A stretch of 64,000 nt of DNA from Blastocladiella emersonii ATCC 22665. Its lineage: Eukaryota; Fungi; Blastocladiomycota. This document shows positions 14,207 to 57,848 of the stretch, in pieces; within the stretch, counting starts at the first letter, position 1, and each line of letters opens with the position of its first letter. A model generated the notes under the pieces. The model was not told where the DNA came from. It made no database searches and was given only the letters and a program-made list of their open reading frames with translations. The position numbers and the translations under genes are program-made. The DNA lies in assembly GCA_025594325.1 (NCBI GenBank), contig JANHCV010000003.1, positions 2,542,001 to 2,606,000 on the forward strand, given 5' to 3'.

Positions 14207-14323
14207 GCCCAGTTTCGGGGATGCGTGGTGCTTAGGTTCAAGGGGAGAGGTTTGTTGACTTACGAACGGCAGCCGGGACTGCAGCAGCTCAAAAATGCAC
14301 TGGTTTAGGCTCACGTGCCTTGT

Positions 14324-31341: not shown

Positions 31342-34300
31342 TCACGTACTCGCCCACAGCTCGCGCACCGTCTGCAGCAGCCGCTCGCGGCGCACGGGCT
31401 TGGTCAAGAACGCGTTGAACCCAATCGCGAGACACCGGTCGCGCTCCGTGTCCATGGCGTTGGCCGTGAGGGCGACCAGCGGCAGCTCGTCGCGCGAGAA
31501 GGTCTGCCGGATGATGCGCGCCGCCTCGATCCCGTCCAGCACGGGCATCATCAGGTCCAGCACCACCAGCTGGATCTCGCGCCCTTGCCCGCTGCCGTTG
31601 TCGGCCATGAGCAGGTCCAGCGCCTGCTGCCCGTTGTCGGCCACCACCACCCGGTGCCCGTCGCGCTCCAGGAATCGCCGCGTCAGCGCCTGGATCAGGA
31701 TGTTGTCCTCGACCAGCAGCACAACGAGGCCGCCCTCGGCTGGCGCGGATGCGGGCGGGGGTGGTGCAGAAGTCGGTGTCGGCGCGGGCAGGGCTGGCGC
31801 GGGCGACGCGTCGCCGTTGGGAGTCGCGACGGGGGTCGGCAGGCCTGGCGCTGCAGGGACCACCGCCTCGTCGACGGTCGGCTCGGGCGAGGCCACGACG
31901 GGCGCTGGCTCCCCGCTGACTTCGGGCTGCTGCTGCTGCTGTTCGACGACCGCCTGCTCGGGCTGCGACACCGCCGGTGCCCGCGCAATATCCACAGCGG
32001 CGATCCCGATCCCGCCGGGCGCGCCATGCACACTGCCGTCGGCATGCGCGCGACACACGCCGCCGTCCCCGGCCGCCTCGCCCACAACGTCGGGACACGC
32101 GCGAGCGGGGATCCGAACAACGATCTCGCGTCGCGCGACGTCGACGTCGACGTCGAGCGTGCCGTTAGCGATCTCGACGAGGCGCGCGAGGACCGCGACG
32201 CGGAGCCCCGTGAGCCGGAACGTGGCGCCCTGCGAGGTCACGGACCAGTCGAACGGGACCGACAGCGCGCCGAGGTCGCGCGGCGTGAGCGCAGCGCTGA
32301 GGGCGATGCGGACGAGGAGGTACGTCGTGGTGGTGGTCGAGTCGGGCCCCGCGGGGGAGGACAGCGACCAGTGCGGGTCGACGCGCGTGTCGGGCGGCGC
32401 CGACGCGCAGACTGCCGACACCTTGTGCAGGGCGTGCCGCCCGGTGCGCGTCACGAGGATGCACGACGGCGCGGCGGTGGTGGTGGGCCCGGTGGATGGC
32501 GCGAGGTGCCCGGCAAATACGCGCGCGAGCGCGACGTGGATCCACGGTTCCTCCGCCGCCGCTGCTGCTGCTGCCGCGGACTCGGGCGACTCGTCGGCCG
32601 CTGCTGCCGCCGGGTCGGGCGACGCCGATTCCGAAGGCATCTCCACCTCGACGTCGTCGCGGTGCGCGCCGGGAATGACGGCGATCATGCCCGCGCCGGC
32701 CGCGTCGTCGGCAATGGGCCACGAGAGGAGCGGGCTGGTGGGCGAGCTAGGCTCAGTCGCGCGCACGTTCGCCGAATCGTGCCGGCGCGCTGGCGGCGGC
32801 CGGTGGTGCGCCGCGTTCCCCTCGTCAACGGCACGTGCGATCGGGTCGCGCGACGGCGGGCCGAGCGGGTCGGGTGACGCGGTCCTTGGGGTCGGCGCGC
32901 CCGACGAGGACGACGCGAGGGCGCCGGGCAGCGGGACCGCGGGCATACGGGCGCTGGCCTCAATGTACTCGACGACGCCGTCGAGGAGGTTGCACACGTG
33001 GTCGGTCGCCGCGAGGATCGTGTCGCGGTCGACGGGCTCGCCGGCGGCCATGGCGCTGCCCTGGATCACGTAGACGGGGTTGCGCAGCTCGTGCGCGAGG
33101 TACAGGAGCAGGTGCCGCTGCTGCGTGTTGAGCGACTTGGTCTCGTCGAGCAGGTCGTTGAGCCGCCGGTCGCGCGCCCGCTGCTCTGTCAGGTCCGTGA
33201 GGACGAGCACCTGGTTCACGTCCGCGTTGCCTGTGGCGCGCGACACGGTCGCCATGGCGTCAACGGGTGGCGCGCCGGGCGTCGGGCGCAGGATCTGAAC
33301 CTCGCGCCGGCCGGGGACGAGCAGCGCGCGGTCCTCGGTGGGTACGGACGGCGGCAGGCCCGCGAGGAACGACGCCGCGTCGCTCTCCGAGAATTGTGAC
33401 ACACGGTGGCCGTGGTGGTGGTGGTGATGCTGGTGCCCGTGCCCGTGGTGATGATGCGCGTGATGCCCGTAGGGCGGGTGCGCGTGGTGGTGCTCGAGGA
33501 GCTGGTGCTGGCGCGCGTGGTGCGAAAGCGGCGGGCGCGCGGGTCCCGCAAACTCGCCCTCAGACTCGCTCGCGCTTCCGCTTGAGCTCCCACTACTACT
33601 ACTCGCGCTGCTGCTGCCGCCGCCATGGCGGTACATGGCGACGATGGACGCGCTGGTGGTCTCGGCGTCGTCGTGGATTCCGGCCGCGTCCATGGCGGCC
33701 GACGACCGAGCGATGCGGTGGCGCAGTCTCCGACGAGCGGTACGTGTGCGCGTGCGGTGGGCCGAGGCGGCCTCGGCGGCGGCAGCGACGGCGGGCGGCT
33801 CGGGGGCGAGGCGGAGCAGGTCCGACAGCTTGGCGACCTGGTGGATGGTGTCGGCCGTGTGGCCCGTGAGCTCGAGCAGCGGCGGGTTGACGCCGGACAC
33901 GGCGCCGCGCGCGTTGACGAGGATCATCGGGTTGGGCGTCGCCTGCATGATGGCTTCCGAGTAGCCCTTCCAGCAGCCGAGGAGGTTCTCCGTCTACGCG
34001 CACGGTTCGGTGGGGAAGTCAGCGACACGATCCAAAGCCCGGCGAAAAAGCAAGAACGCGTACGTTGCGGAGCCGCTGGAGGCGAAGCAGAATGTACCGG
34101 ACAACGGCAGCGAGGGTCGCGCCGCCGGCGACGATGAGGAGCGGTCCCCAGATCGCCCATCCGGAGATGAAGAGCTTACCGAGGGCGCCCGAGGGCGTGC
34201 AGTCGAGCTCGAAGCGCTGGTCGCCGAGCTGGATGACGCGCGAGTAGAGGAGCGGGAGGTCGGGTCCGTCGGACGAGTTACGCGGCGTGGCGTAGACGAG

Positions 34301-35556
34301 GGTGCCGTTGATGCGGAGGACCGTGTTGATCTGGGCGGCGACGGACGCGGACCCGACCGTGGCGTTGAGGTACGGCACGGCGTTGAACCCGCTCGACACG
34401 ACGAGGGTGCGGTTGCCCGCAATGGCGGGGATCTCGCTCGGGCGCGTGGTGACGGGCGGCGCGAACACGACGACGCCGGGCGCGGTCCCGCCGCGCGGCG
34501 CAACGAGCGGGACCACGTCCGAAATCTGCACGCGGTTGGTGGCGAGGGCGCGCAGGAGCGGTGGGACGCGGGCGCCAAAGGCACCGTCGAGGCCGACCAT
34601 GGACGAGTTTTGCGGGTACGTGTAGACGATGGGCCAGAAGACGGGGGCGGCGGCGTCGGGGCGGCGGACGTAGCCGGCGACGCCCGTGGTGGTGACGACA
34701 GTAGGCTCGACGATGGTGATGCCCGTCGCGGCCTCCCAGGCAATGCGGTCGGCGGCGGCGACGCGCTCGAGGACGACGAAGCGCAGAAAGTCGGAGAAGC
34801 GCGAGTCGCGGCCAAAGGCCCACATGGACTGCGGCGACAGGACGGGGATCTGCTCGACATAGGCGCGGTAGAAGGCGGTCGGGTCGAGCAGCTGGTTCTG
34901 CAGGTCGCTGGCGAGGCGGTCGGCCTGCTGGGTGCAGCGGAAGGTGAAGACGGACTGGACGTTGGCCCACTCGGCGGCGTCGATGGAGAGGTGGGTGTAG
35001 GCGGCGAGGCCGCACACGAGCGAGAAGACGAGCAGCGGCACGAGCCAGGCGAGCCAGGTGGCGCAGTTGATGGGCGGGACGCAGGCGAGCCAGTGGCGGG
35101 CGGTCGCCGAGGCGGCCGAGGTGGCATGGGCAAAGGGCGGAGCGGCGGCGGCGGCGGCCAGGGCGTGCTTGTCGCCCTTTGCGCGGCGGGATGGCGATGA
35201 TGCGGGAGCGGGTGGGTCGCCGTGGGCGTGTTGCTGCGCACGACGTGGTGGGGCGGCGAGGATGGCAATGTGGCCCTGGCGGTGCTGGCCCGATGGCGGA
35301 CGGTCGTGCGAAGGAGGATGGTCGTGCGAGGGGGGTCGTGGTGGTGGCGGCGGTCCGCGAGCGCGTTGGCGGCCCTCCTCGCCGTCGCCGTCGTTGCCCT
35401 CGGCAGCGGCAAGCGGGGTGTAGCCGCGAGGCGAGGCGTGGCCGTCGTGGCTGTGGGGCCGGCGGCGGGCGCGCGGGTTGGCGGCGGCATGGCGGCGGCA
35501 CCGCGGCTCGGTCGGCTCGAGCGGCGCGGCGAGCAGGCGGTGGTGGTCGCACGGCA

Positions 35557-35606
<50 letters not shown>

Positions 35607-35842
35607 GGTAACGCGTGGGCGTGCGCGTGGGCGTGGTGGAGATGGTGGCGGTCGCGGTGGGCGAGCAGCGGGGACGGCGCGTCGTCGACTGCGGTCGAGG
35701 CGGACGACGAGGGCAGCGAGGCCGAGGCGGAGGACGCGGAGGTGGACGGGGTCGAGAACCAGCGCGGCAAGCGCGGCGGGGTCATTGCGCGTGCTGCGTG
35801 GAAGGTCGGTCGCTCGCTAGCAGCGCGGCGGGCACGTTGCAT
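31342..35842 (-). CDS. HK1: CHASE-PAS hybrid histidine-kinase-like receptor with degenerate ATPase domain and complete receiver (intron 34063-33994)
   Basis: TM1, CHASE-like region (ERVAAADRIAWE...YTYPQN...GLDG...ALAT...VPLV), TM2, PAS (QATPNPMILVNARG...VNPPL...LTDLTEQR), H-box LAHELRNP, REC (VEDN, DLMMP, ALTAN, TKP). Start is 35842 or 35785. Confidence 0.85.
35558..35602. repeat. (CGG)15 microsatellite encoding poly-Pro in the HK1 N-terminus
   Basis: Direct read; matches the P15 run in the ORF translation. Confidence 0.9.
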
Positions 35843-36283
35843 GGAGTGGGAATTGCATGGCCGGGTGGTGGGGGGTTGCGAGGAGAGGAGCGGGCGTGAG
35901 TCAAGTTCGGACGTGACGGCGGGGCGGAGCGAAGAAGGAGGGGGCACGCGCACGCGCACGCACGCGGCCGAGTCCCCCCATGCGCGCGAGAGCACGACCG
36001 CGGGTGCGCGCGTAGCGTCCCTGCCGCGGATGGCCGGAGATGCCAAGCGACGCCACGGATCGAATGTCGACTGCTACTGCGACCGACGCCCACCACAGTC
36101 GCGGTCACAGCCAACTGGCCAACGCACCTTACTGTATTATCATACGTGTCACCTCACGGTGAACGGTAGTTTACAAGAGGAAGCCTCGAAGCGCTAGACG
36201 CCGCGCGGGAGAGAGAGAGAGCGAGCGCCCGCCGTCGCGCCGTCGCCTTGACCCTTGCGCGTCGCCCTCATCAACCCCTGCCT

Positions 36284-38743
36284 TCATGTCCAGTGGCCGG
36301 GCCGGCGCGAACCTGGACTCGGCGCCGAGGCCCACACTGTGCGCCCCGCCTCCCGTCCCCCGCCACGCGCCTGGGCCCGCCGGTCGGTCCCTGCCGGGCC
36401 TGCTCGATCGACGCGTCCCGATCGCCTCGTGCCTCCGCGGCCGCACTCACCGCCCGACCCGCGCAGCTGCCGTGTCGCCTCGACTCCGTCGAGCACGGGC
36501 ATAATCAGGTCCATGAGGATCACGCCGACGGCCGCGCGCGCGGGCGAGCCGGTCATGAGCAGCGCGTCGAGCGCCTCCTGCCCGTGGGCCGCCGTGAACA
36601 CGCGCGCGTACCCGGCACGCCGCAGCGTCGCCACCGTCACCCGCTGCACCAGCGCGTTGTCCTCGACCACGAGCACCGCCGTGCTCTCTTTTTGTGATGG
36701 TGGTGCTGCAGCTGCTTCCTCGGTCGACTGCGCCACCTGCTCAGGGGGCGGCGGCGGCAGCTGTTTCGGTGCTGGCGCTGAACTCGACGCTTCTGGCACT
36801 GCTTCCGGTGGCTGTGATCCGACGGCACACGCGTCAGGGACGACATCGGACAGCTGCGCTTCCGCCGGCGCGGGCAGCACCACAGCGACTGCCGCCGAGG
36901 CCGAGTCCAACATCAGCTCCGACTCGACAAGCGTCGCCTCCTCGTCGGCGTCAGCCGCGCGCGCTGCGCCGAGCAGCGGCGGCCCACCGGGCAACGTCGG
37001 CACGGGCCACCGCCACGCCGGCGCCCCGCCCTCGCCGCCAATCGCCTGCAGCGGGCACGGCGCGCCCGAGGGCGTCTTGCACGGCCGCACGGGGACGCGC
37101 AGCGTGAGCAGCCCGTCGTGCGCCGACACCGCGAGGGTGCCGCCCGCGGCCTCGGCGAGCGCGTGCATCTTGGCGAGCGCGGGATGGCGTTGCGTGGCCT
37201 CGAGCGGTGGCACGCGCAGGCGGACTTCGGCGACCAGGTGCGGCGTGCAGCCCGTCTCGACGAGCACGCCGAGCGTCCACCCGTCGACGGTCGTATTGGT
37301 GAGAGCGCGCCCGGCCACAGCGACCTCGGCGAGCGCGCGCCGCGCGCGACGTGTCACGCACACGCACGGCGGGGTGGTCGCGGTGCGCGGCTGCCCGTGC
37401 GGCGAGCCTGGGAGCCCCGTCAGGCTCTCGGCGGCCACGTCGACGTGGTACCACCCGTCCGCGTCCGTCGAGTCGCCCGCGTGGTCGCTGTTGCTGAGCG
37501 TGTCCGCGGACCCGGCGCGCGAGCCGTGCGTTGGTGGCACTGGCTCGAGGAGCACGGTGCCGGGAGCGAGCGCGGCGGGCGCGGGCACCAGCGTACGAGA
37601 CCACACCCCGACGCTGCCACCGCCGCCGCCGTCGCCGGTGCAGCTGCCAGCGCTCGACTCGACGCGCTGCTGCTGCTGCACCGGGCACGCCGACCCGGCG
37701 CCCGATGGACACGCTCGCACCGGCAGCCGCGCGACGAACATGTGGCCGGGGTACCCGCGGCACGGGACGACGTCGACGGCGCCGCCAGCGCGGCGCGCGA
37801 GGCGGCGCAGGACCGCGACCTGGAGCCCGAGCAGGCGGAACTCGGCGCCCTGGCCGGGGACCGACCAGTCAAAGTGGGTGGTGAGCGCCGTGATCTTGTG
37901 CGGCGCGAGCGTCGGCGGGAGCCACAGGCGGATCTTGGCCATGGCGGTCGCCGTGGCGCCGTCGCCGAGCGCGGGGATGTACGACCACCCGTTGGCCGTG
38001 GTGCCGGGCACGGTGCGCCCGACAATGGCGATCTTGGTCAGCGCGCAGCGCGCGAGCGGCGACACGCACATGCACGGTGGCGACGGCGACGGGGACGACC
38101 CGGCGCACCACTTGAGCCCGTGCAGCGACTCGGCCTCGATATTGACGTGGTGCCACCGCGCAGCGTCGGCCTCGCTCGCACCCGTGCTCGCCGTCGCGTC
38201 GACGGCAGGATCGTCGTTCTCGTCGCCGTCGGCCGCGCCCGTATACTCGACGACGGCTTGGAGGAGCGCGTGGACGTGTTCGGCGGCCGCGACCACGGCG
38301 GCGCGGTCGACGTCCGTCCCAACGGCCTCCATGGTGCCCTGGATCACGTAGACGGGGTTGCGCAGCTCGTGCGCGAGGTACAGGAGCAGGCGGCCCTGCT
38401 GCGCGTTGAGCGACTCGGTCTCCTTGAGCAGGTCGTTGAGCCGCCAGTCGCGCGTGTGCTGCTCGGTCAGGTCCGTGGTCGCTACTGCTGAGGTCGGGCG
38501 AGTCTGGCAGAGCGCTGCCCGAGCCGAGGATGGCGGGCGGCGGCCACAGCAGCGTGGTCGAGGCGGTTGACCCCCGCGTGGGCTCGAGGTGGCGCGCGAA
38601 CGGGTCCGACCTCTGCCGGTCACGGCGTGGTTGCGCACGCGTGCTCCTCGAACGCGCGGTCGGCGAGGAGGACAGCAGCAGGCCGAGGGTCGCGTCCGAG
38701 GGTGCTGGAGTCGGCTCAGCAACGTGCGAGCGGGCAGCGGCAT
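36284..38743 (-). pseudogene. HK2: truncated paralog (no CHASE/TM/PAS; HisKA + two HATPase-like domains + half receiver); pseudogene or soluble decoy
   Basis: Homology starts at TTDLTEQ. It has the H-box LAHELRNP and two copies of the W.HV.(I/V).AESL...PC.CV unit. The receiver stops after DLIMPVLDGVEATRQLR, with no TAN or KP motif. The frame is open from ATG 38743. Confidence 0.65.
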
Positions 38744-39143
38744 CGAGATCTGGGCACAGCGGCGCACGTTCGCCAGTTTGCCGGGCCGGCTGCCGGGTGC
38801 GACGTGTCGCGGCGCGTCGTGGGTCACGGCGGATCGGCTCTGGTTGGCTCAGACTCCATGTCACGGCCGTTGCGGGAAGTGGATTGATACATGGCTGCTG
38901 GGCAACGATGCAGACCGGCGAGAGAGAAGAGAGAGCGCGCGCACAGCGTGCAGGCCGCCGCCAGGGGCCATCCAACGCACCCCGCGCCCGCGGTGATCAC
39001 GCGCACTTGTCCCTCGCGTCGCAGACGCGTCCGTGCGTCTGTTTCAAAACAGGTCTTGAAGCCATCGCCACCGTCGAGTACACAAAACGAGATGAATGAA
39101 TTGCAAGGTAGCGAGCGACCAAAAAAAGGCGAGGGGGGAATAT

Positions 39144-42100
39144 TTACACGAGCGCGGCCGCGTCGACGGCGCCACCCTCGACGAGCGCCGCGACGGTACC
39201 GACGAGCACGTCCTTCTTGACGGGCTTGGTGAGGAATGCGTTGAACCCGGCGTCGCGGCACCGCGCGCGCTCCGCCTCGAGCGCGTTGGCCGTGAGCGCG
39301 AGCACCGGTAGCCGCGCGCGCGACCACGTTGCGCGCAGTTGCCGCGTCGCCTCGACGCCGTCGAGCACCGGCATCATGAGGTCCATGACCACCACGTCGA
39401 CGGGGAGCTGCTCCGGGTCGGTGGGCGAGGACCGCGCGGCGAGCAGGTCGAGCGCCTGCTGCCCGTCGTCCGCGACAAACACTTCGAACCCGGCGCGCTC
39501 GAGGAACCGCCGCGTCAGGTTCTGGATCAGCTTGTTGTCCTCGACGACGAGCACTCGGAGCGCAGCGGCGGCTGGCGGTGCGAGGGTGGCCGGTGATGGA
39601 GCGGTTGCAGTTGGTGGTGGCGGCGCTGATCGAGGCGCTGATGGTGGTGCTGCAGCAGGAACAGGCGAGAGCGGGGACGTTGATACAGCTGGTGACGCGG
39701 GCAACGGCGTCGCGATGGCAGCCTTGACGAGTCCCGGCGAAAGCAGCGGGACCGACTGCGGTATTGGTCGCGCCGGCGGCGGTGGCAGTCGGGGCGGCGG
39801 CTCGAGCGCGACCGCCGGGTCCACGGTGCGCGGGCCGGGGCACGCCGCGCCGTCAGCACACGGTCGCGCGGGCACGGCCAGCCGGATCGCGCGGCCCGCG
39901 CAGTCGACGTGCACGCTGCCGCCCGCGAGCGACGCGAGCAGCCGCAGGATCGCGAGCTGGAGGCCGACGAGGCGGAACTCGGCGCCCTGCCCGGGGATCG
40001 ACCAGTCGAACGTCGTACTGAGCGCGCTCTGGTCGTGCTCGGGCAGGTCGGCGGGCAGCGCGAGCGCGATGGTGACGGCGGCCGAGTCGTATCCGCAGTG
40101 CGAGACGGACGTTCCGGGGACCGCGGTCGCGACAGCCTCGAGCTTGCGCAGCACGCGAACCGCAGCGCGTGTCAGGACGAGGCACTGCGGCCACGCGCCG
40201 CTGACGTCGCCGAGGTGCGCGCCGGGCACGCCGCGGAACAGGTCGCGCACCGCGCTCGCACCGCCGTAGACGTGCGTCGGCAGCTCGAGCGCCGCTGCGC
40301 CGTCGCCGGGTAGCCGTGACCGGCTGGACAGCGACATGCGGCGGCGGCGGCGGCTCGCGGCCAGGCGGCGCGTAGCGAGCGACTCGGCCGACCCGGTCCC
40401 AGGCGGAGACACGGGCGAGCCAGTGAGCGGCGAGGATGACGGAGCTGCGGCCGCCACCGAGTCGCCCGCGTCCACGGCCTCGCGCGCCTCCATGTACTCG
40501 ACGACGGCGTCGAGCAGGGTGCACACGTGGTCGGTCGCCGTAGCGACAGCCGCACGATCAATCGCGTCGCCCGCCGCGGCCGTGGTGCCGGCCGTGTCGC
40601 CGCCGCCCTGCACGGTGCCCTGGATCACGTACACGGGATTTCGTAACTCGTGCGCGAGGTACAGCAGCAGGCGGCGCTGCTGCGCGTTGAGGAGCTCGGT
40701 CTCGCGCAGCAGCTCGGCGAGGCGGCGGTCGCGCGCGCGCTGCTCCGTCAGGTCCGTGAGGACCAGCACCTGGTTGACGGCCGGGTTGCCCGTCGGCTGC
40801 GACACGTTGATCATGGCGTCGATGCGGCGCGGCGGCGGCGGCGGGAGTGCGGCAGCCTCGAGGTCGACAAACTCGGGAGCATCGGACGCGGGGGTGTACG
40901 GGATCACGCGGACCTCGCGGCGGCCCGGGTGTAGCATGGCCGCTGTGACCGAGTCGATGAGCGGGTCGGCCGCCATGGCCTTGCCGCTCCCGCTGCTCGT
41001 GGTGCTGCTCATACTGCCCTTGGAGAGGAACTTGGCGGCGGCAATGGCCGGGCGGTTGGCGCGTGTAATGTCGTCGGTGGTCGTGACCGCAGCGGCCGCG
41101 GCAGCGGCGGACGTCACCGGTGCGGGTCCCGACCCAGCGGCCGTGGACAGATCGGTCGAGCTCGGGCACGGCGAGTCGGTAGGCGCGAGCAGGTCGGCGA
41201 CGCGGAACACGTTCTGGCGGATCGACTCGGGCGAGTGGCCCGTGAGCGCGAGGAGCGGCGCGTTGACGCCGACGACGGTGCCCTTGGCGTTGACGAGGAT
41301 CATGGGGTTGGGCGTGACCTGCATGATGGCCTCGGAGTGCCGCTTCCACGACCCGAGCAGGCGCTCGGTCGAGTGGAACCGGCGGAGGCGGACGAGGACG
41401 CGGGCCACGGCGACGGCGAGGACGAACCCGACGAGCGCCGTGATGATGGGCGCGGCCACGTTCCACCCGGACGTGAAGAGCGCGTTGAGCTCGGCCGACG
41501 CGACGCACGTCGCCTGGAACGTCTGCGCGGCCGCGGTGATGGGCAGCTTGACGGTGAACTGCGGCAGCGGCGTCGCGTCGGCGGGCGCGTCGGGCGGCGG
41601 CGAGTGGTACGAGAAGGCGTCGCCGAGGTCGATGGTCAGGCGCACGAGGCCGCGGGCGGCGGCGGGGCCGAGCGACGAGTCGAGGTAGCTTTGCAGCTAT
41701 GGGCGGGACGAGAGTCAGTTGATGGCCACGGTCGAGGTCGAGGTCGAAGTGAAAAGCGTACGTTGAACCCAGCGCAAATGGCCCATTGTGACCCGTCGGG
41801 GCGCGTGAAGGGGCGCGAGTAGTAGAGGACGCCCGGGACCGAGACGCCGAGCGGGGCGCGGAGCGGGACGACGGTGGTGAGCTGGCCGAACCCGGTCTCG
41901 TTGGCGGCGGCCGCAACAAACGCCTCGCCACGGATCCCCGAGCTGAGGTCCCAGCCGGTGAGCGATGCGCTGTACGGGTAGCTGAGCGACACGACCCAGT
42001 ACTCGTTGGCGCGCGGGCGCGGGCGCGAGGCGATGATGCGCATGTCGTCGCGCGCGATGCGATCGACCGACTCGAAGATGGTCACGTTGTTGGCAGCCTC

Positions 42101-43858: not shown

Positions 43859-44794
43859 TCACGCGGCGCCGTTGGCCGCCTTGGCTGGCGGCGCGGGCAA
43901 CCGGCCGGCGCGCTCGAGGCTGCCGTCGACAAGGCGCCACGCGGGCAGGAACTCGTCATCACGAACGCGCAGCGCCGGGTTGGGCACGGTGCGGTCGCGC
44001 GCGCCGAGCGACGTGTACCCGAGGTCGTACAGCGGGCAGTACTCGACGCGCAGCGCGAGCAGGAACAGCCAGATGTCGGCGAACCGCCAGTCGAGGATCG
44101 GGTTGACGCGCACCAGGTCGGGCCACCCCTTGTCCACGTCGCACGGCTGGAACGCCGCCAAATGTGCGCACCACGGGTCGGTCCGCCGCGTCCCGACGCA
44201 CACGGCGCGCGCCGCCGGGAACGCCGCGTGGAACGCCGCGAGCCCCGCCTGCATCGGGCCCGCCACCGTCACCATGTGCAGCCGGTACCGCGCCGCGCAC
44301 TTGGCCACAAACGCCGCCTCCTCGGGGAACCCGTTGGCCGGCGCCACGTGCACCGTGATCAGCTTGGTCGCCGCAGCGTCGGCGTCAACGCCCGCGAGCC
44401 GCGCGTGCCGGTGCAGCACCGCCGCCAGCATGTGCAGCAGCACCGTGCAGTCCTTGCCGCCGTTGAACGACATGCCGAGCTGCCGCGGCGGCGGCGCGTG
44501 ATACTCGAGCACCGCCGCCTCGAGCGTGGCGACTGCGCTGGTCACGATGGAGACGAGCCGCGCGCGTGCTGCGTCGGAGAGTTGGGAGGTTGCGGGCAGC
44601 GGGAGCGGTTGTGCAGGGTCGACGAGCCGCGTCGTGGCGACAAACTCGTACACGTCGCGCTCGACGGCCGCGAGGTCGAGTGGCGGGTACAGCGGGAGGT
44701 CCTCGGGGCCGCTCTCGGCGAGGGCCGCCAGCGCGGCGAACGCGTCGGCGTCGGTGCCGAGGTCGACGGCAGTCATGGGGCCGTTGGGTGTCAT
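43859..44794 (-). CDS. FAD1: FAD synthetase (FMN adenylyltransferase, PAPS-reductase fold)
   Basis: SFNGGKDCTVL, GTRRTDP, RVNPILDW, LYDLGYTSLG, ER.GR motifs. Confidence 0.92.
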   Translation of the reverse strand: MTPNGPMTAVDLGTDADAFAALAALAESGPEDLPLYPPLDLAAVERDVYEFVATTRLVDPAQPLPLPATSQLSDAARARLVSIVTSAVATLEAAVLEYHAPPPRQLGMSFNGGKDCTVLLHMLAAVLHRHARLAGVDADAAATKLITVHVAPANGFPEEAAFVAKCAARYRLHMVTVAGPMQAGLAAFHAAFPAARAVCVGTRRTDPWCAHLAAFQPCDVDKGWPDLVRVNPILDWRFADIWLFLLALRVEYCPLYDLGYTSLGARDRTVPNPALRVRDDEFLPAWRLVDGSLERAGRLPAPPAKAANGAA

Positions 44795-45097
44795 TGGTTC
44801 ACCGTCTAATACATGGGAGGAAGGAGGGCGGGAGAGTGAGCTGACAGATGGGCGTGGAAGCCCGATCGTCGCGTGACCGGCGCGCGCGGCAGCGTGGCGC
44901 GGAGACATTGCATCACTCTGCGTGGCGCATCAGGTGCGCGCACGTGCGCCGATCTTTCTCGCGCGTGGCGTCTCCGCTTGGCGTCTCCCCTTGGGTGCCG
45001 CGCCACAGCAGTCCCCGCTCTCCCTCCCTCGGCAACTCTGCACCGAACCTGCTACGCATCAACGAACTTCACACGCACGCACGCACGCACCCGAGTC

Positions 45098-46446: not shown

Positions 46447-46521
46447 GAACGATTTGATAGACATGTAACTGACTTATACATTTGCCTTCAAAACTGCTCG
46501 AACAATAACGGTTTCTCCACT

Positions 46522-49500
46522 CTACGCGACGTACACGCGCGCCTGCGCAATCACCCGGTGCCCGGTGAGGTCGACGAGCCCCGGGAACACGGTCCACGCG
46601 ACCTCGGCCGTCGCCGCGCCGCTACCACCGCCCTTCGCGCCGCCGCCCTTCATCCCCGTAGTGTCGTGGACGCTGGGCCCGCCGACGACGATCATGAGCG
46701 CGTCGCGCACGGGACACCCAGCCTGCGGGACGACGAGCGCCGCGTACGCGCGCGCCGCCTTGATCCGGTACCACCGCACCGCCTGCGTCCACAGAAACTC
46801 GTCCCAGTCGATGCCGCCGCTCGCGAACGCCGCAGGGAACACGCGGGACAGGTCTTGCCGGAACTGCGCCGCGCCGACGCGCGCGACGAGCGCGAGCGCC
46901 GCAACCGGGTCGTCGCGTGCGTACTGCTGCGGCGGGTGGCCGCCCAGCGCGCCGGGTGCGAGCGCGGGCGAGGAGGAGGCGGCCGCCACCGCGTGCATCC
47001 CGGCGGGCCGCATCACGTCGCGCGCGCGCACGTCCCTTGCGACCGCGGCGATATCGGCAAACAGGTGCGCGAGGTGTTTCGGCTTGGGCGCGGCGCGGCT
47101 TCCGTCGCGACTCACGACAAACAGCGCCGGGTGGACCACCGCGTCGAGGAACTTGCGCAGCAGGCCCGTCAGCTGGTGCAGGACCTGCGCGCGGTGCCGG
47201 CGCGCCGACGCGAGCCCGTCGACGGCGTGCAGCGACGCCGAGGCCATGACCGGGGACGCCGTTGGGTCGGTCGGGGTGAGCGGTTCCGGGGCGGCTGTCG
47301 ACGAGTTGGAGACCGCAACGGCGTGCGCGGCGACCGTGCTCAGGTCCACGAACATGGCGTACCAGTCGTCGAGCACGCCCGCGAGCGCGACCTCGGGGTC
47401 CGCGTCCGGCGACGAGTACGACGGGAACACGGACGCGAGGTCGTCCTCCTCGTTCGTCGCCATTGCGTGGTTTGCCGTGTGCGCGGGCGCGGGGTGATGG
47501 TGCTTGCGCCGCGCGGCCGTGGCCGTGGGCCGCAGCCCGAACGACGACAGCGTGACCGAGCAGCCCGCGAGATCGAGCGGCGCGGGTTTCGGGCGCCGCT
47601 GCGACCCGGCGCGCGTCAGCGACAGCGCGAGCGACGCGACGGGCGTGGTTGAGCCGTACTCGTGGTGTTGATGAGCAGGCACGTCGCGCTGCGTGCGGCT
47701 CGTGGTCGCAGCAGCTGCGGCGGCGGCAGCCCGGTACTTGCTCCCCGACAGCGACCGGCGGAGCCCGTGCACGGCGCCGGCGACGACGCGCAGCGCGCCC
47801 GAGGACTCGGTGCTCGCCCGCGGCATCGTCGCCGGAGTCACGAGCGCGGGGGCGGCGACGCGCGTGTCGAGCGACAGGGACACCTCGCTCTCGCGCAGCG
47901 CGGCCGGGACCAGGTACATGCTCTCCTCGGACCCGGGCGGGATCAGCAGCGAGTCGTGCGACGGGCGCTTGCGCGCCTTGGCCGCACCAAGCTCGCGCGC
48001 GGGCTCGAGGGCGTCGAGGTGCGGGCGCGGGGACATGTTGCCGTCGCCGGCGCGCAGCGACGCGTCTGACGGTGCCACGACGCCGTGGATCGGGAGCGAA
48101 AGGGCGCTCCCGCTGGCGAGCCGCTCGCGCGAAATGGACGCGACCTCGGCGCCGCCGTCCTCGTGGTCGTTCATGGGCAGCGTGTGCTGGCCGAGGGCCG
48201 CGGCGGCCGACGATGAGGCCGACGGCGTGCTGCGGAAGCTGATGGCGTACTGCGGGGCGGCCGTCGTCGTGGACGCGGTCGCGAGCGAGGCGGTCGCCGA
48301 GTCTGTCTTCTTGCCGTGACGTACCGCGGGCGACACGTCGGCCGCGCGCGCGTGCTTCGACGGCGCCATCAGGCTGCTGCCGTCGTTGGACCACGACGTG
48401 ACCCAGGGGCTCGCGGGCGCGGTCCCGTTGACGGGCGTGTCGCACGGTGTCGCCGCCGAGTCGCAGGAGGCCGTCGAAGAGGAGGCAAAGTAGAGGCCCT
48501 TGCCCGGCAGCAGCGTGCCGCTGGTCCCCGTGCCCGTGCTGCTGGTCGGGCTCGCGGTCATGGCGCGGTGCGTAGTGCGGCGCGCAACGTCGGGCGACGC
48601 AGCAGCGGCGGTGGTGGCGAGGAGCGGGCCAAGCGACGCGTCGCTGGTGGCGCCGTCGCGGACCGTGTACAGGTGGGCGACGGAGCCGGGCGAAGCGGGC
48701 GAGCCAGCACGAATGATGGCCGAGGTGGCGGCGAGTGGCGACGGGACCGGGGTCTCGCACGGACCGGCCCAGCCGGAGGGCGCGCTGGCGCCGGTCGGCG
48801 AGGTGCGGGCGAAGGTGGAGCCCGGAGCGAGGACGAGGTGGTCGCGGGACGGCACCTTGCGCGCGCGGCCGACCATCTCCTGGCGGCGGTCGTAGCGGCG
48901 CTTGCGGTTGCGACGGCGGCGGAGCAGGAGGAGGGCGGCGATGCACAGGGCGAGCAGGGCGAGGGCGCCGAGGACGGGGCCGACAATGAGCCAGGTGCGC
49001 GAGGCGGTCAAGTCCGAGGACGAGTCGTCGTCGGGGACGCTAGCACCCGTGGTCGCGGCGGTGCCCGCGCCCGTCGGGCTCGCAGGCGAGGAGCCGTTCT
49101 TGCCGCTGCCGGCGGCCGAGGCGACGGTGACGCGGCCGGTGCAGGCGATGGGGCCGACGATGCTCGAGTCGGGGCGGTTGAGGGTGACGCAGGCGGCGGG
49201 GTTGTCGTTGAAGCAGCCAATGACGGCGCCGGTGCGCGGGTCGGCGTCGGCGGCGGCGACGACCTCGTTGATACGCAGGCCTGATGGATGGCGCGGAGTA
49301 AGTCTCGATGACCATGCCACACGATCAAGCGGATGATGAGTACAGTACCAGCAGGAAGGCCCTGGAAGGCGGCGTCGCCGGGCGGGCCCGAGCAGCCGGG
49401 GTCGCAGGCGCTGACCGAAGCGCCGAGGGCGGCGGTACCGCGGGCGCGCACGTCGTCGACGAGGTCCGAGTGGATGACGAGGGTGCCCGAGGAACAGAGC

Positions 49501-49787
49501 AGGGCCACGTCCCGCAGCGGGGCGTTGTCCTTGCCGACGGTGGTGAAGGGGTAGACGACGCAGCCGCGGATCGGGGCGGGGGCGCGCGGGTTGATGATCA
49601 GGTTGTCGATGGCGGTGCGGACGCCGGCGGGCAGGCGCAGCCAGTTGGCGGACGAGCGCCAGGCGGCGGCGTTGTGGGTCGGGCGGTACGACGGCATGGC
49701 GGCGCACGCGCCGAGCGGGAAGACGACGTCGGCGCCGGCGGGGGCGGCGGTCGCGGACGCGCGGGTCGACGAGGCGGTCGCGCTCAT
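46522..49787 (-). CDS. Single-pass membrane receptor-like protein: Cys-containing ectodomain, long S/T-rich cytoplasmic region, conserved-looking C-terminal domain (intron 49348-49281)
   Basis: The intron joins ORF 49008..49910 to ORF 46522..49707 in frame (GLPA-GLRINE). TM LIVGPVLGALALLALCIAALLLL is followed by RRRRNRKRR. The start is uncertain. Confidence 0.65.
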
Positions 49788-51098: not shown

Positions 51099-54000
51099 AT
51101 GCCGTCCCCACCGCGGCTGCCGCTGCCGCTGGCCCGCGCGAGCACCCACTCGTCGTCTTCCCCGCCACCACCGCGCCCGTGCCGCCACCCCCTCGACCGC
51201 TGCTGGTGCCCCGGACCCGGCCGCCGCAGCAGCAGCACTGCGTCGCGCTCGCGCTCGCGCTCCCGCATCCGCGTCGACGCCGCTGCCGTCGCAACCACCG
51301 CCCCGCCCGCCGGCACCCACTTTATCGCTGTCGGCGGCAGCACCGGCAGCACCGGCAGTAGCCATCGGGACCATACTCGCCCGACTGGTCCAATCCAGCG
51401 GCCCGCGCGACGATCCTCCTCCGATGGCGACTGCAGCGGCAGCAGCAAGGGCGCCGCCGTGAGCCCGCGCCGGCTGCGCGTCCTCCGCCTCGCCTCGCTG
51501 TACGGGCCCGCGCTGCTGGTCCTCCTCATCGCCGCCGCCGCCACCATCCTCGCCCACCGCTCCGTGCGCTACGTCGAGTGGAAGAAGTTTGTCTCGGCCG
51601 TCGGCACCCGCTGCTCGATCCAGGCCAGCAAGTTCGAGTCCGAGCTCAACGGCCGCCTGCTGACCCCGACCCGCGCCATGGCCGCCTTCGTCGCCGGCCG
51701 CGCCGCACCCGTCGGCGACGACGTCCTCGCCCGCCTGTGCAGGGCCACCAACTTCTCCTCGCTCAACCGCGCCCTCGTCGCCGAGCGCGTGCCCGACGCT
51801 GACCGCGCCGCCTGGGAGCAGCGCACCGGCATCACCATCAAGGAAATCGACCTCTTTGGCGACCCGCAGTCGGGCGTCCGCGTCTCGCAGTTCCGCCCGC
51901 GCCCGCCCGGCAGCCGGCCCGAGTACTGGCCGGGCATCGCCACCGCGCCCAAGAACACGTCGATCCTCGGCCTCGACGTCAACGATGGCGTCCGCGCCCC
52001 CGCCTTCCTCGCCGCCGCCTACCGCACCAGCGCCGACGGCGCCCTGTCCAACGCCTTCCCGCTCGTCGCCGCCGCCACCGAGCCCGACGATCCCGCCGGG
52101 TCCTACTCGTATGGCATCGTCTACTACGCGCCGAGCTTCGACGTGCCCACCAACGCGTCGGGCACCCCCGGCAATACCACCTACGTCGTGTCGCTCGCTT
52201 TCAACCTGCGCCGCTTCATGGACACGGCCATCTGCCCGCCCTCGGTCGCCAGCTACATGCGCTACACGCTCTACGTCAACAACACGGTCGCCTACGTGTC
52301 GCCGTCGTTCCCGACCGACGGCGCCCCCACGGGGCTCGCCGTCCGCCGCAGACTCACCCTCGGCGGCCAGCCCATCATGCTCCTGTGCCAGCCCACGGCG
52401 CCCTCGGCCGCGCTCTACCTCACCATGTGGCAGATCTACGCCCCCATCATCGCCGCCGTCGCCGGCGCCCTCCTCACCTTCACCGTCTACCGCCTCACGC
52501 GCCGCTTCCAGTGGTCGCGCAAGGTTCGTTTCCTCTTGTGTGGCTACTGCTGCCATGACACTCGCTAAACCAAGACTTGTGTGTAGGTCGAGGACCTCCT
52601 CGGCAGCTGGCGCAGCTACTCGCAGGCCGTCATCCAGGCCAACCCAAACGGCATGATCCTCGTCGACCACGCCGGCATGGTCACGGGCGTGAACGAGCCG
52701 CTCATGATGCTCGCCGGACACAACTGCACGTCGATCCAGTCCGTGTTCCAGATCACGGACCTGCTCAAGCTCATCCCGCCCCCGGACGGCGACCGCCGTC
52801 ACCGTGAGCGTGAGCATGAGCGGAACCAGGCCGCCGCCGACGACCACGACCACCGTGACGGCACTTGCGAAACGGACGCCCTGCTCGGCTCGCCGCCCCG
52901 CCCGCCCCGCAGCCGGTCCCAACACCACTACCGCCACGCGAACACGGACGCGCACCACCGGCGCCGCCGCCGCCAGTCGCCGTCGCCCGAGTGGACCCGC
53001 AACCCGCGCGTGCACCAGCAGCTGCTCCTCGCGCCGGGCCGCCGCGAGGCCCAGCTCCTCGGCCCGCACGGCGCCCTCACCGACGTGGTCGTGAGCGTGT
53101 CGGAGCCGACGGACGACCCGGAGGTCAGCCAGGTGCTCGTGCTCACGGACCTGACGGAGCAGCGCGCGCGCGACCGCCAGCTCAACGAGCTCCTCGAGGA
53201 GACCAAGTCGCTCAACCAGCGCCAGCGCCGCCTGCTGCTGTTCCTCGCACACGAGCTGCGCAACCCCGTCTACGTGATCCAGGGCACCATGCAGGCCGTC
53301 GAGTCCGACGTCGACCGGTCCGCGGTCCTCGCCGCCGCCGAGCACATGCGCGCGCTCCTCGAGGGCGTCGTCGAGTACATGGGCGCGGCCGACGGCAACG
53401 ACGGTGACGCGGCCGAGGTCAGCGAGTCGGCCGAGGGTGGGTGGTACCACGTCGACGTCGCGGCCGAGAGCCTGCACGACCTGCCCGCGTGTCCACTCGC
53501 TGCGCCACCACCCGCGGCCGCAACATCGCCCGCCTGCGTGTGCGTGTCGCCCCTTACGCGGCGCGCGCTCGCCAAGATCGCCGTCGTCGGGCGCACGATC
53601 CCGGGCACCGCGGCCAACGGGTGGAGCGTGCTCGACTCCCCGCCGCCGGCACGCGCCGAGGTCCGCCTGTGGCTCCCGCCGACGCTCGCGCCGCACGAGG
53701 TCAAGGCGCTGACCACGCGGTTCGACTGGTCAGTCCCTGGCCAGGGCGCCGAGTTCCGCCTCCTCGGGCTGCAGGTCGCGGCGCTCCGCCGACTCGTCGA
53801 GCGCGCCGGCGGCAGCGTCAGCGTGGCCCGGTGCGCGCCGTCCGAGCCGGGCTCCGGGTACGTGCTCGCGGTATGCGTCCCCGTCCGCGCGTGCCCCGCG
53901 CCGCCCGGCGCCCCGTGCCCGCTGCAGTCCATCAAGCCGCCAGCGCCGACGCGCGATGCGTGGCCAGCAACCGCACCGACGTCGCCCGTGCCCTCGCGGC

Positions 54001-54713
54001 CGCCATCGGGTGGCTGTTCACCGCCCGCCACGACCGCCGCCGCCGTGTCGTCCGCGCTTCCGGTTCCCGCGGATCCGCCAGAAACGAGGCCCGCGGCCGC
54101 TGTATCAGCAGACTTGCTCCCGCCGCCGCCGCCACCGCCTGACCCGGCCGCGCGGGCGCCCAGCCCTGTAGCGCAGTGCGCTTCGCCTCCAGCCGCTGCC
54201 GCGCACGATACCACGTCGCCCGATGCCGCTGCCGCTGCCGCTGCTGCGCCCGGCGCACCACCACCGCCGCAGGAACGCACGGCCGTCCTCGTGGTCGAGG
54301 ACAACGAGCTCGTGCAGCGGATCACGGTGGCGACGCTGCGGCGCGCGGGGCACGTCGTGCACACGGCGGCCAACGGGCAGGAGGCGCTCGACGCGCTGCT
54401 GACGCCCGGCTCGCCCGCGCGCGCGGCCGTCGGCGTGGTCCTCATGGACCTGATGATGCCCGTGCTCGACGGGGTCGAGGCGACGCGGCGGTTGCGCGCC
54501 ACCGACGACGCGCATGTCGCGTCGCTGCCCGTGATCGCCATCACGGCGAACGTGCTGCGTGAGGAGCTCGTGCGGTGCTACCGCGCCGGGTTCACGGGGT
54601 TCATGGCGAAACCCGTGCCGAAGCCGCGGCTGCTCGGCGCCGTGGCCGCGGCGCTCGCGGGCACCGCGGCCGGCGGCGGGTACGAGTGGCCCGACGACCT
54701 GCTCGACTCGTGA
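51099..54713 (+). CDS. HK4: CHASE-PAS hybrid histidine-kinase-like receptor with degenerate ATPase domain and complete receiver (intron 52524-52586)
   Basis: TM1 (LYGPALLVLLIAAAATILA), CHASE-like (ERVPDADRAAWEQRTGITIKE...RPEYWP..TAPKN..ILGLDV), TM2, PAS, LAHELRNP, REC (VEDN, DLMMP, AITAN, AKP). Confidence 0.87.
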
Positions 54714-55086
54714 ACACACATACATGTAAAGACAGACACACGTCAATCAACAGGGCAACCGTTCTTCTCCCGCTTCCGCGAGCGCCAGGCCCGTATCGCG
54801 ATGCCGCGGCGGCATCATGCTAGCTCCATGCCCCGGTTCGGCACCATCGGTCGCGATCGGGCGCCGTCCTGAGCGCCGTGCCGCGCGCGGGCGCAAAGGG
54901 CTTCCCAAAGTGATCGGCGCGCCAAAACGTGACGCCGGCGCCGGTTGACGCCACGACTTGCGCCGCGAGAAGCGAAGCGCGGCAGGGGATCGCCGCAGGA
55001 AGCCTTCGCTTGTCGCCCTGCGCACACCGCGCCCATCGCAACCCGCCCTGCCCATGTAACCTGCCGTGTCCCAACTCGCCGCAACG

Positions 55087-57848
55087 ATGCCGCCATGGGT
55101 CCGCCTCCCAACCGCCGCCGCGCGCGACGCGGCAGCAATCCACGAGCACGACGCGGCGGCCCGCGGCGGTTCGGACGCGACGCTCGTGTTCAGCAGCGAT
55201 TCTGCCGCTGCTGCCCCCGGCCCTGCACCGCCACCGCCGCTAGCCAAGCGCACGCGCGTCCAGCGTGCCGCGCAGTGGGCCATCTTCGTGGTCCCGGCCG
55301 CCGTCGTCTGCCTCGCGATCGGTACGGGCGCGGCCCCTGCACCATGCGACGGGGCCCTTAGCCTAACAGCCGCGGCACGGTAGGGCTCGCCGTCTACACG
55401 CACCTTGAGATCCGCGCGACCGAGGTGCGCAATGTCGACCAGGTCTACACCTTCCGCTGCACGCAGCAGGCACAGCGGCTGCGCAACGACCTGCAGAGCC
55501 AGCTCGTCGACCCGAGCCTCTACTTTCGCACCTACGTCACCATGCTCGGCGCCGTGAACCAGTCCGCCGTGTCGAGTTTCGGGGATGAGGGCGGCATTTC
55601 GCCGTTCCTGCGCTTCGTCATCATGCAGCGCGTGCTCGACGCCGACCGTGCCGCGTGGGAGGCCGCCACGGGCACCGTCATCACCGTTCCCAACGCCATC
55701 AACACGTCGGGGGTCGGCAGCGCTGTCCGCCGCCCCGACAGCGCCGCAAGCGTGTACTGGCCCGTCCGCTACACGTGGCCGCGCAACGACACCATCGCCG
55801 GGATCGACGGCGCCTTCGGCTCGCGCGCTGTCGTGCTCAACCGCGCCATCGCGACCGGCGAGTACCAGATCTCGGACGTGGTCCCGCTCGTCGCACCGCG
55901 CGTCTTCGCGGCACCCGGCATTGTCCTGTTCACCCCGCCCGTCGACCGCGCCATCGACCGCACGACGTGGATCTCGTGGACCGGGTTCAACGTACGCTCT
56001 GGCTTGGTTTGGGATGTGCTCATGCGCCGCTCATCACGGCCCGACGCTGTAGATTGTCCCGTACCTCGAGTCCACCATGACCCCGACCGCGCGCTCCTCA
56101 CTGGTCCGCATGCGCGTCGCTATCAACGGCACCAGCGTGTACAGGAGCCCGGTCCCGCCCAACGACCCGCCCGACTTTGCCGCCTCGCACACGGAGCCCA
56201 TCCTCCTCGGCGGTCAGACCTTCACGCTCGAGTGCGCGCCGTCGACCGCGCTCCGCGCCATCTTCGCGTCTGGGTGGGCCGCTGGCGCGCCGATCCTCGT
56301 TGTGGTCGGCGGACTCGCACTCGCTGCGCTCGTGCACCAGATCCTCAAGCGGCTTCAGCGCCTGCGAGCGGTACGTTCGTGACGGTGGTATCGTTCGATC
56401 GGACACTGACGCGCGCAACGTGAGGGGTGTAGACCGAGTCGCTCATCGGGTCATGGAAGGGCTATACCGAGGCCATCATGCAGGCCACGCCCAACCCGAT
56501 GATCATGCTCGACGCGCGCGGCGACATCTCGGTACCGTATCCCAGCACGACGCCCACTCACCTCGCAGCGCGGCTCTGACCGGTGCATGTGTAGGGCGTC
56601 AACGAACCGCTTCTCGCCCTGACCGGCCACACGCCCGGATCCGTGAGCCAGATCCGCGACCTGCGCGAAATGCTCCGCGTCGCCGAGCCGCGCTCGCCGC
56701 CCGCCTCGCGGCTTTTCGTGCGCCGCGGGAGCACCGATCCAGCTGACGAGGGTGTCGATGTGAGCGACGCGTTCTTGGCTGCCCAGCGCCGGGCGCGGGC
56801 GGCGAATGATGACGAGACCGACGACGATTACGACGAGGACGACGATGACGGCGACGCGCAGACCCGCGCCCTGGTCACGCCCGGACGCCGCGAGGTGCAC
56901 GTCCTCCGGCCCGCGCCGGGCGCCGACCCGATCGACGCCATGGCAACCGTCTCGCACGCGACGGGCAACTCGGTCGTCAACCAGGTCATTGTGATCACGG
57001 ACCTGACCGAGCAGCGGCGGCGCGACCGACGGCTCGCGGAGCTCCTGCGCGAGACGGAGCTGCTGACGGCGCAGCAGCGGCACCTGCTCCTCTACCTCGC
57101 GCACGAGCTGCGCAACCCCGTGTACGTGATCCAGGGCAACGTCGCCGCGGCGAACGGTCAAGACGCGCCGCCCGTCGACCGCGAGGCCGTCATGACCGCC
57201 ACCGAGCACATGTGCGCGCTACTCGACGGCGTCGTCGAGTATATCGAGGTCGGCGCCGGGCTGCCGCGGTGCACCAACTCGGGCGCCGCCATCGACGCGG
57301 CCGTCACGGCGGGATCCGCGCCGCCCGTCGCGCCGCCGCCGCTGCCGAGCGACCCGCTCCGCAAGCGCATGCACGTCGACCTGGCGCACGCGCTCGCTCT
57401 GCCCCCAGGGGTCGCCGTCACGGGGCTCGACCCGATTCACATGACGGCGGCCGCGCTGCGCGCGCTGTCCAAGCTTGACGATCTGACGCGCTCGGTCCCT
57501 GGCTCCTACCTCTCGTCCATTGCCGTCACGCCCGCGACTCCCGCTACCGGCGACTGGCCGGGGCGGAGGCCGCCGCTTACCGTGACCGTGACCGCGACGC
57601 TTTCGATCGCGGTCCCCGACGACGCGCGCATCCAGTCCGTGACGGCGCAGCCATTCAACTGGACCATCTCGGGGCTCGGCGACGCGTTCCACCTGCTCGG
57701 GCTCCGGCTCGCGATCCTCATGCGGCTCGCGGCGCTCGCTAAGGGCGGCGTCGGGGTGCGCGCCGCACAACGCCAGGCCGTCGTTACGGTGCCCGCGTGG
57801 CCGTGCGCGGCGCCGTGTCCGCGGGCGGGGCCGGCGACAGAGGCGTGA
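55087..57848 (+). CDS. HK5: CHASE-PAS-HisKA-degenerate ATPase receptor without receiver (introns 55322-55383, 55992-56052, 56371-56432, 56532-56594)
   Basis: Four canonical introns restore a continuous frame closely similar to HK1 (FRCTQQA.RL..DLQ.QL.DP; WEAATG; GSWKGYTEAIMQATPNPM). The ORF ends at ...WPCAAPCPRAGPATEA*. Confidence 0.82.

Follow-up and report, generated by a model that had tools for sequence, protein, structure and literature searches.

Architecture of the receptor cluster

The analysed segment of the Blastocladiella emersonii ATCC 22665 genome (contig JANHCV010000003.1, positions 2,542,001 to 2,606,000; 64 kb, G+C content 72%; hereafter the window) contains five paralogous CHASE/PAS receptor genes, HKa, HKb, HKc, HKd and HKe, which are related to histidine kinases. 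We showed that all five retain the H-box with the phospho-acceptor histidine, while the ATP-binding N, G1 and G2 boxes of the following domain have been lost. This domain occupies the place of the catalytic and ATP-binding (CA) domain and is referred to below as the pseudo-CA. It is preceded by the dimerization and histidine phosphotransfer (DHp) domain and, in some of the genes, followed by a receiver (REC).

HKa, HKb and HKc lie on the reverse strand. HKa is composed of an upstream open reading frame (ORF) with the CHASE sensor domain (34019..36046; Pfam, 34.5 bits) and a main ORF (31342..33948) in which Pfam matches place a PAS domain, DHp (32965-33198), pseudo-CA (32092-32550) and a complete REC (31393-31719). 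The linker between its PAS and DHp domains (33406-33495, reverse strand) contains a His-rich tract of approximately 30 residues, in which runs of H are interspersed with G, A, P and Q. This tract is not present in the other paralogues and could bind metal. HKb (36284..38827) is a sensor-less gene without CHASE or PAS, in which DHp (38243-38476) is followed by two tandem pseudo-CAs (37706-38161 and 37076-37459) and by the N-terminal half of a receiver (36455-36676). The second pseudo-CA of HKb is devoid of a 22-residue segment with the F-box and G2, and HKb may be a decaying or specialised copy. HKc (39144..41645) encodes a transmembrane (TM) helix, PAS, DHp (40494-40757), pseudo-CA (39855-40286) and a complete REC (39219-39551); no CHASE domain was detected by Pfam upstream of this gene.

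The remaining two genes are located on the forward strand. The HKd ORF (52653..54713; PAS, DHp at 53145-53378, pseudo-CA at 53436-53897 and complete REC at 54288-54617) matches a portion of H9P43_003728 of the same strain (1183 residues; CHASE and receiver domains) with 100% identity, and the CHASE domain of HKd is known from the precomputed annotation. HKe is represented by a CHASE-domain ORF (55425..56423; Pfam, 25.3 bits), which corresponds to H9P43_003729 (P0003; CHASE-PAS-HisKA in the NCBI model), and by the ORF 56643..57848 with DHp (56997-57242) and pseudo-CA (57360-57809), after which a stop codon occurs; no receiver was found in any downstream frame.

The original prediction needs correction in two respects: HKb has two tandem pseudo-CAs, and only the receivers of HKa, HKc and HKd are complete. 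In these three the phospho-Asp is readable in the sequence, as are the acidic pair (E-D in HKa), the Thr and the Lys. The receivers gave a strong score with the Pfam Response_reg profile. In all five genes the ORFs are open over 400-870 codons.

Loss of the ATP-binding boxes and retention of the fold

The H-box (H-E-L-R-N-P) is invariant in the five genes, whose HisKA scores (21-27 bits) are at or slightly below the Pfam cutoff of 26.9. The HATPase_c profile gave no match at E<=0.1 in any of the five ORFs. When the six domain copies were scanned in isolation, the only match was that of HKd; with 12.7 bits (E 0.18) it stayed below the cutoff of 26.4, and it was confined to profile positions 59-109.

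The fate of the individual boxes within this domain of approximately 145 residues was established with hhalign and with two joint alignments that included canonical kinases, the N-box being placed by the joint MAFFT alignment and by the helix positions in the structural models. The alignment with PrrB that HMMER gave for the N-terminal half was discarded, as it misplaced the N-box. The N-box (NxxxNA) is replaced by R/H-x-L-x-K-[IVL], with no Asn in the helix of any copy. The G1 strand and box (V-R-D-T-G-V-G-M) has become R-L-W-L-P-P-T, with three residues deleted and no glycines; the counterparts of DxGxG are LPPT, LSAA, LPAD or VPDD, and hhalign sets LPPT--- opposite DTGVGM. In the column of the G1 Asp this residue has been retained, without the glycines, in HKe and in the orthologue from Catenaria anguillulae, and is gone from the other four genes of the window. 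The F-box (F-x-x-F) is changed to F-D-W, and G2 (G-G-T-G-L-G-L) to F-R-L-[LTV]-G-L. All motifs quoted in the original prediction were located, and the replacements that it proposed for the three boxes were mapped in the same way by hhalign and by the joint alignments; together with the Pfam result, they bear out the loss of N, G1 and G2 next to a preserved H-box. When the window is translated in all six frames, there are exactly five instances of the signature F[DN]W[ST], all of them within the expected domain (32242-32253, 37862-37873 and 39999-40010 on the reverse strand; 53721-53732 and 57654-57665 on the forward strand).

An unrecognised exon supplying the missing boxes had been named as one observation that would overturn this picture. 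A regular-expression scan of the six frames of the window revealed no N/G1/G2 motif set; its only matches were an off-frame, G-rich chance match at 34472-34663 and a GxGLGL repeat belonging to another gene. Moreover, DHp, pseudo-CA and REC are located in a single uninterrupted ORF in HKa, HKc and HKd, and the models H9P43_003728 and H9P43_003729 concur. The presence of these domains in one open frame and the absence of the motif set elsewhere make a missed exon unlikely. The repeat itself (60038-60127, forward strand) consists of three GxGLGL units with 36-base spacing in one frame, and forms a short tandem Gly-rich array in an unrelated ORF.

Despite these losses the skeleton of the GHKL domain can still be aligned, as had been proposed. 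An alignment of the family profile with six canonical CA domains (hhalign) gave a probability of 96.2% (E 2.1e-9, 68 columns), and a search of PDB sequences with the pseudo-CA profile (hmmsearch) retrieved GacS (E 0.0058), with four of the five weaker matches also being CA domains. AlphaFold produced confident models. DHp plus pseudo-CA of HKd (14-sequence family alignment) was modelled with a predicted local distance difference test score (pLDDT) of 85.2 and a predicted template modelling score (pTM) of 0.78, and shows an alpha/beta domain that comes after a DHp hairpin of two helices. For the pseudo-CA of HKc alone (16-sequence, family-only alignment) the values were 92.1 and 0.85, and the segment at the position of the ATP lid was modelled at pLDDT >90. 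The top Foldseek matches in the PDB were exclusively DHp-CA or CA structures of kinases (all of the top 50 for the domain-only model were kinase CA domains), with RetS as the best match when the domain alone was modelled and ZraS when DHp was included. In VIA-align the Z scores were 10.8 for the histidine-kinase-related domain (HKRD) of phytochrome A, 10.7 and 10.6 for RetS, 10.1 for the ThkA CA, 9.8 for the ETR1 CA and 9.1 for ChpT, with 126-139 of 144 residues covered at 3.1-3.6 Å. At the level of sequence comparison and structure prediction, it is thus confirmed that the domain is a degenerate histidine-kinase CA domain in which the Bergerat alpha/beta fold has been retained.

Family range, constraint and gene neighbourhood

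A search of 1.84 billion representative proteins with a DHp-plus-domain profile (E<=0.001) retrieved only 25 proteins. All named eukaryotic matches originate from Blastocladiomycota, namely B. emersonii, B. britannica, C. anguillulae, Sorochytrium milnesiophthora and Paraphysoderma sedebokerense, and the remaining ones are marginal bacterial kinases, P0026 and a few others. The members of the family represent different degrees of loss. The CHASE genes of Paraphysoderma mostly have a Pfam-positive HATPase_c, and most keep a G2 box such as GGVGLGL; among six paralogues examined, the G1 Asp is kept in five, and all six already carry R/K and H/Y instead of the two N-box asparagines. Three of the Pfam-positive genes (CHASE-HisKA-HATPase_c-REC) are clustered in P. 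sedebokerense (L004, 1088-13858), and in two products of this cluster (P0025 and P0036) both asparagines are changed to R/K and H; these genes represent an early stage of the same degeneration. In Sorochytrium a G2 remnant (FGGIG) is kept and G1 is lost. In Blastocladiella and Catenaria all three boxes are lost and a common new segment, FDWS..GQG.EF.L.GL, is found. The sequences depict a stepwise decay that begins in Paraphysoderma and leads, with Sorochytrium in between, to Blastocladiella and Catenaria; the loss of the N-box, already evident in the six Paraphysoderma paralogues, predates the B. emersonii cluster. The transmitter of Paraphysoderma matches ordinary bacterial and fungal kinases (e.g. 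of the Sln1 type) with E values down to 1e-25, which ties the family firmly to canonical kinases. One further member, P0007 of B. britannica (KAI9217654.1), has lost the phospho-acceptor His (its H-box reads A-A-S-M-V-A-P) and still keeps the lid FDWS..QGA.F.L and an intact receiver. This indicates that the lid is conserved independently of His phosphorylation.

Although identity between the pseudo-CAs of the five paralogues is as low as 29-63%, 16 positions of the domain are invariant, and the lid segment (F.W.....G..F.L.GL) is invariant at eight positions. In a comparison of HKc with a homologue from Catenaria, the C-terminal half of the pseudo-CA shows 63-70% identity, the same level as the receiver (50-70%), whereas the linkers, composed of low-complexity sequence, are 20-37% identical. 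Non-synonymous distances rank the segments in a similar manner: they are lowest in DHp (0.13-0.24), comparable in the receiver (0.33-0.55) and the C-terminal half of the pseudo-CA (0.21-0.71), and highest in the N-terminal half (0.40-1.11) and the linker (0.69-1.13). In two near-identical Catenaria copies the ratio of non-synonymous to synonymous distances (dN/dS) is below 1 in every segment (DHp 0.06, linkers 0.09-0.21, pseudo-CA 0.37), although with nine changed codons in the pseudo-CA the value for this domain alone is underpowered. Considering the invariant positions, the receiver-level identity to Catenaria, the ranking of distances and the ratios below 1 in Catenaria, we conclude from the sequences that the domain is maintained. 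Most of the constraint falls on the C-terminal half, which comprises the G1 strand, the F-box, the G2 helix and the last strands; the lid, the G2 helix and the last strands are maintained above all, while the N-terminal half is held mostly as a fold. The view that a GHKL domain without ATP boxes is kept by selection rather than decaying is upheld by the models, by the fold and profile matches and by the motif kept in Catenaria.

The dN/dS check suggested for this domain was also carried out for the five paralogues (NG86 method). The pseudo-CA gave values of approximately 0.8-1.2 (median 1.16 for the N-terminal and 0.82 for the C-terminal half), which cannot decide the matter, with the control segments at 0.60-0.98 (receiver) and 0.17-1.15 (DHp). 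The paralogue ratio was therefore rejected as a signal of neutrality, given that a plainly functional receiver is in a similar range. The measure is uninformative because the G+C content at third codon positions (0.86-0.91) compresses dS to 0.2-0.8.

A histidine phosphotransfer (HPt) gene of the YPD1 type adjoins the cluster. Its exon (30813..31238, forward strand; Pfam Hpt, 25.2 bits with a cutoff of 24.6) contains the phospho-His motif GHFLKGS near 30933, and the gene is convergent (tail-to-tail) with HKa, the 3' ends being approximately 100 bp apart. The same arrangement was found in Catenaria, where the closest homologue of HKa is placed tail-to-tail with an HPt gene at two loci (HPt genes on the reverse strand, L001 10288-10990 and L002 4432-5132), and the exon with the phospho-His is almost identical in the two genera. 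This microsynteny, conserved across genera, suggests that HPt and the HKa-type pseudokinase are functionally coupled. At the loci examined in Sorochytrium and Paraphysoderma, tandem CHASE genes were found with no HPt gene adjacent.

Several other features of the window were recorded. A gene with a PAPS-reductase domain is located inside the receptor cluster (43859-44908, reverse strand; Pfam, 89.8 bits), and a PAPS_reduct gene is also present near the Catenaria orthologue (L001 1511-2191, forward strand). Between the two halves of the cluster there is a long ORF of 1061 codons (46522-49707, reverse strand) with weak Pfam matches resembling single-pass TM segments (TM_ErbB1 reaches 19 bits and is under the cutoff); it may be an orphan receptor-like gene. 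The region 12000-18000 has a G+C content of 0.56-0.62, compared with approximately 0.72 elsewhere. Neither Rfam nor tRNA scans gave a match in the window. The sequencing runs listed included no RNA run, and the four runs that contain the locus were rejected as transcript evidence, as they hold DNA contigs of the source sample and say nothing on splicing; the “joints” seen in them are artefacts of the assembly graph, with sides of 20-21 letters.

Proposed mechanism and comparison with known systems

The following reading, to which we would give about an even chance of being correct, is based on sequence, models and the analogy with RetS of Pseudomonas aeruginosa. The five proteins may be RetS-like pseudo-histidine kinases that serve as an ATP-independent, ligand-gated drain (phosphate acceptors or phosphatases) on an HPt relay. 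They would not perform ATP-dependent autophosphorylation; RetS, with a milder loss of the G boxes, is incapable of it as well. Phosphate would pass by reverse transfer from phosphorylated HPt to the receiver Asp, and possibly onward to the DHp His, and would then be lost by hydrolysis aided by the HExxN transmitter-phosphatase motif, or stored on the His. The extracellular CHASE and cytoplasmic PAS domains would set the drain rate, so that the ligand would control the phosphorylation level of a shared HPt and, in this way, the downstream response regulators. The segment FDWS..GQG.EF.L.GL is envisaged as a permanently ordered, nucleotide-independent replacement of the ATP lid, and this fixed lid might dock on DHp and the receiver and hold a phosphatase or transfer-competent state. 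As background, N-box mutants of EnvZ are kinase-minus and phosphatase-plus, Arabidopsis AHK4/CRE1 dephosphorylates AHPs when cytokinin is absent, and Dictyostelium DhkA is a CHASE receptor working by phosphatase-direction flow. HD/E-x-x-T/N is the transmitter-phosphatase motif of HisKA kinases, and the CA domain with its nucleotide-stabilised ATP lid stimulates the phosphatase reaction through contact with the regulator (PMC7005713).

A number of points weigh against a drain. The roles in ATP binding, phosphotransfer and phosphatase action are predictions from sequence and models, and the gene models consist of ORFs and NCBI predictions. A drain needs a canonical kinase that loads the HPt, and in B. 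emersonii such a kinase is hypothetical. The dN/dS of the pseudo-CA is near 1 among the paralogues, though the controls show that this measure fails. HKe, without a receiver, and HKb, with half of one, cannot act as sinks via the receiver. Moreover, His mutants of HisKA kinases retain phosphatase activity, so a role as phosphatase only would dispense with the His; its strict retention in the cluster therefore hints at real His phosphorylation by some donor.

In an alternative that we regard as rather improbable, the proteins are co-receptors phosphorylated in trans: an active histidine kinase, in a DHp heterodimer or a receptor array, would phosphorylate their His, and phosphate would flow forward from His to REC and HPt. 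The Glu next to the His is the general base for autophosphorylation, and both residues are invariant. The complete receivers of three genes and the HPt gene adjoining HKa also speak for such a forward relay, and RetS with GacS offers a precedent for DHp-DHp contacts between different kinases. However, all five members of the cluster are dead, no active partner is known, and the relatives found in Blastocladiales and Sorochytrium are all without a recognisable HATPase_c. The DHp of the family is also very diverged (hence only 25 of 1.84 billion proteins retrieved by the profile), which counts against pairing with an ordinary kinase.

Another alternative, which we consider unlikely, is that the pocket has been repurposed. 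The basic pair that replaced the N-box asparagines and the ordered FDW..GQG lid would then build a new binding site, and the domain would be a new sensor or effector module and not a passive scaffold; the ligand might, at the same low probability, be a phosphorylated receiver or HPt, an anion, a small phospho-ligand, or a nucleotide without Mg2+. This possibility draws on the conservation of the substitutions (R/K and H/Y throughout the Paraphysoderma set of six; R/H..K in Blastocladiella and Catenaria), on the eight invariant positions of a lid modelled at pLDDT >90, and on P0007 of B. britannica, which keeps the FDWS lid after the loss of the His. The pocket itself is hypothetical, however. 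The conserved residues may merely pack the fold or the DHp interface, and the N-terminal half, where the basic pair is located, evolves nearly as fast as the linkers.

It is very unlikely that the proteins are still kinases, with unconventional ATP binding and either His autophosphorylation or Ser/Thr kinase activity. The fold is intact, an Asp persists in the G1 column of HKe and the Catenaria orthologue, and the phytochrome HKRD is among the best structural matches; plant phytochromes are reported to act as Ser/Thr kinases, and so are subfamily II ethylene receptors. On the other hand, GHKL ATPases need the Asn of the N-box (a Mg2+ ligand) and the Asp of G1 (contact with adenine), both of which are essential, and the N-box asparagines, the G1 glycines (with a three-residue deletion) and the G2 glycines are gone from every copy; RetS, with its milder loss, cannot autophosphorylate. 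Finally, the idea that these are dying duplicates, whose domains are similar merely through recent duplication, is hardly credible and already largely refuted for the family, since the ratios near 1 and the sensor-less HKb (half a receiver, truncated second pseudo-CA; possibly itself decaying) are opposed by the long open frames of all five genes, the 16 positions invariant among paralogues of 29-63% identity, the motif kept in Catenaria and B. britannica, and the dN/dS of 0.06-0.37 across the segments of the Catenaria copies.

Of the precedents cited in the original prediction for degenerate kinase domains, the phytochrome HKRD is the top VIA-align match. RetS and ChpT are closer precedents than DivL. 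The nearest known system to the proposed drain is RetS (PDB 6dk7/6dk8), which ranks first or second among the structural matches of either model. It resembles the B. emersonii family in being a membrane receptor whose sensor is extracytoplasmic, in keeping the H-box with HExx(T/N), and in having a degenerate HATPase. RetS has a degenerate HATPase without G-boxes, does not autophosphorylate, keeps HExxT, and acts as a phosphate sink and transmitter phosphatase (PMC5992135). Its receivers are the phosphate sink, a role that could by analogy be played by the complete receivers of HKa, HKc and HKd. RetS is, however, a bacterial protein encoded by a single gene, with two receivers and one defined partner (GacS), while the B. 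emersonii family is eukaryotic and lineage-wide, combines CHASE with PAS, has one receiver or none, carries another lid motif and adjoins an HPt gene. With sequence identity of only about 16-18%, the loss of the ATP boxes must have been independent of that in RetS.

ChpT of Caulobacter and the phosphotransferases of the Spo0B type, which transfer phosphate from one receiver to another, also combine a DHp-like hairpin bearing a phosphorylatable His with a CA-like domain in which the use of ATP has been given up (ChpT, Z 9.1). They differ in being soluble, stand-alone proteins without sensor or receiver, i.e. dedicated relay proteins and not receptors. The plant phytochrome HKRD and the ethylene receptors ETR2, ERS2 and EIN4 resemble the family as eukaryotic receptors whose kinase-related domain is degenerate with the fold kept. 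In the phytochrome HKRD and subfamily II ethylene receptors the phospho-acceptor His is lost and signalling proceeds outside the His-Asp relay, whereas the B. emersonii family has kept the His, HExxN and the receiver. DivL of Caulobacter (PDB 4q20), which matches the DHp-CA model, is a non-catalytic, kinase-like signalling module with reversed information flow (PMC4211667); it carries Tyr instead of His and a far less degenerate CA, while the His is kept in all five B. emersonii genes.

In the searchable text of Herivaux 2017 (PMC5285503) and Kabbara 2019 (PMC6324907), fungal CHASE proteins (group XIX), which share the CHASE-TM-(PAS)-HisKA-...-REC architecture with the B. emersonii family, are treated as hybrid kinases and “cytokinin receptor homologues”, and the former proposes that those of early-diverging fungi reflect early sensing of plant hormones. 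This text, figures and supplements being outside its scope, contains no remark on the loss of ATP boxes in the Blastocladiomycota members. The Catenaria proteins CaHHK3-5 of these papers may belong to the pseudokinase family. If the Blastocladiomycota members are indeed unable to use ATP, signalling in the kinase direction, as in the plant AHKs, is not available to them, and the inference of hormone sensing needs a caveat. Should the pocket prove to be rebuilt, it would constitute an output domain of a kind new among eukaryotic receptors, and the “cytokinin receptor homologues” of this phylum would signal unlike any plant or bacterial CHASE kinase.

To conclude, pseudo-histidine kinases as such are already known (RetS, DivL, ChpT, phytochrome, subfamily II ethylene receptors and recent bacterial cases). 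The family described here provides a natural graded series, in which a catalytic domain can be followed across genera as it turns into something else. As a eukaryotic counterpart of RetS with an HPt gene next to it, it allows a phosphorelay of the reverse or drain type to be tested directly, three purified proteins being sufficient, and knock-outs combined with biochemistry may be feasible in Blastocladiella, an established model of zoospore signalling. What is new in comparison with the known systems is a eukaryotic, phylum-restricted family of CHASE receptors, in which the loss is fixed and graded across genera and is accompanied by a new conserved lid and a conserved HPt neighbour.

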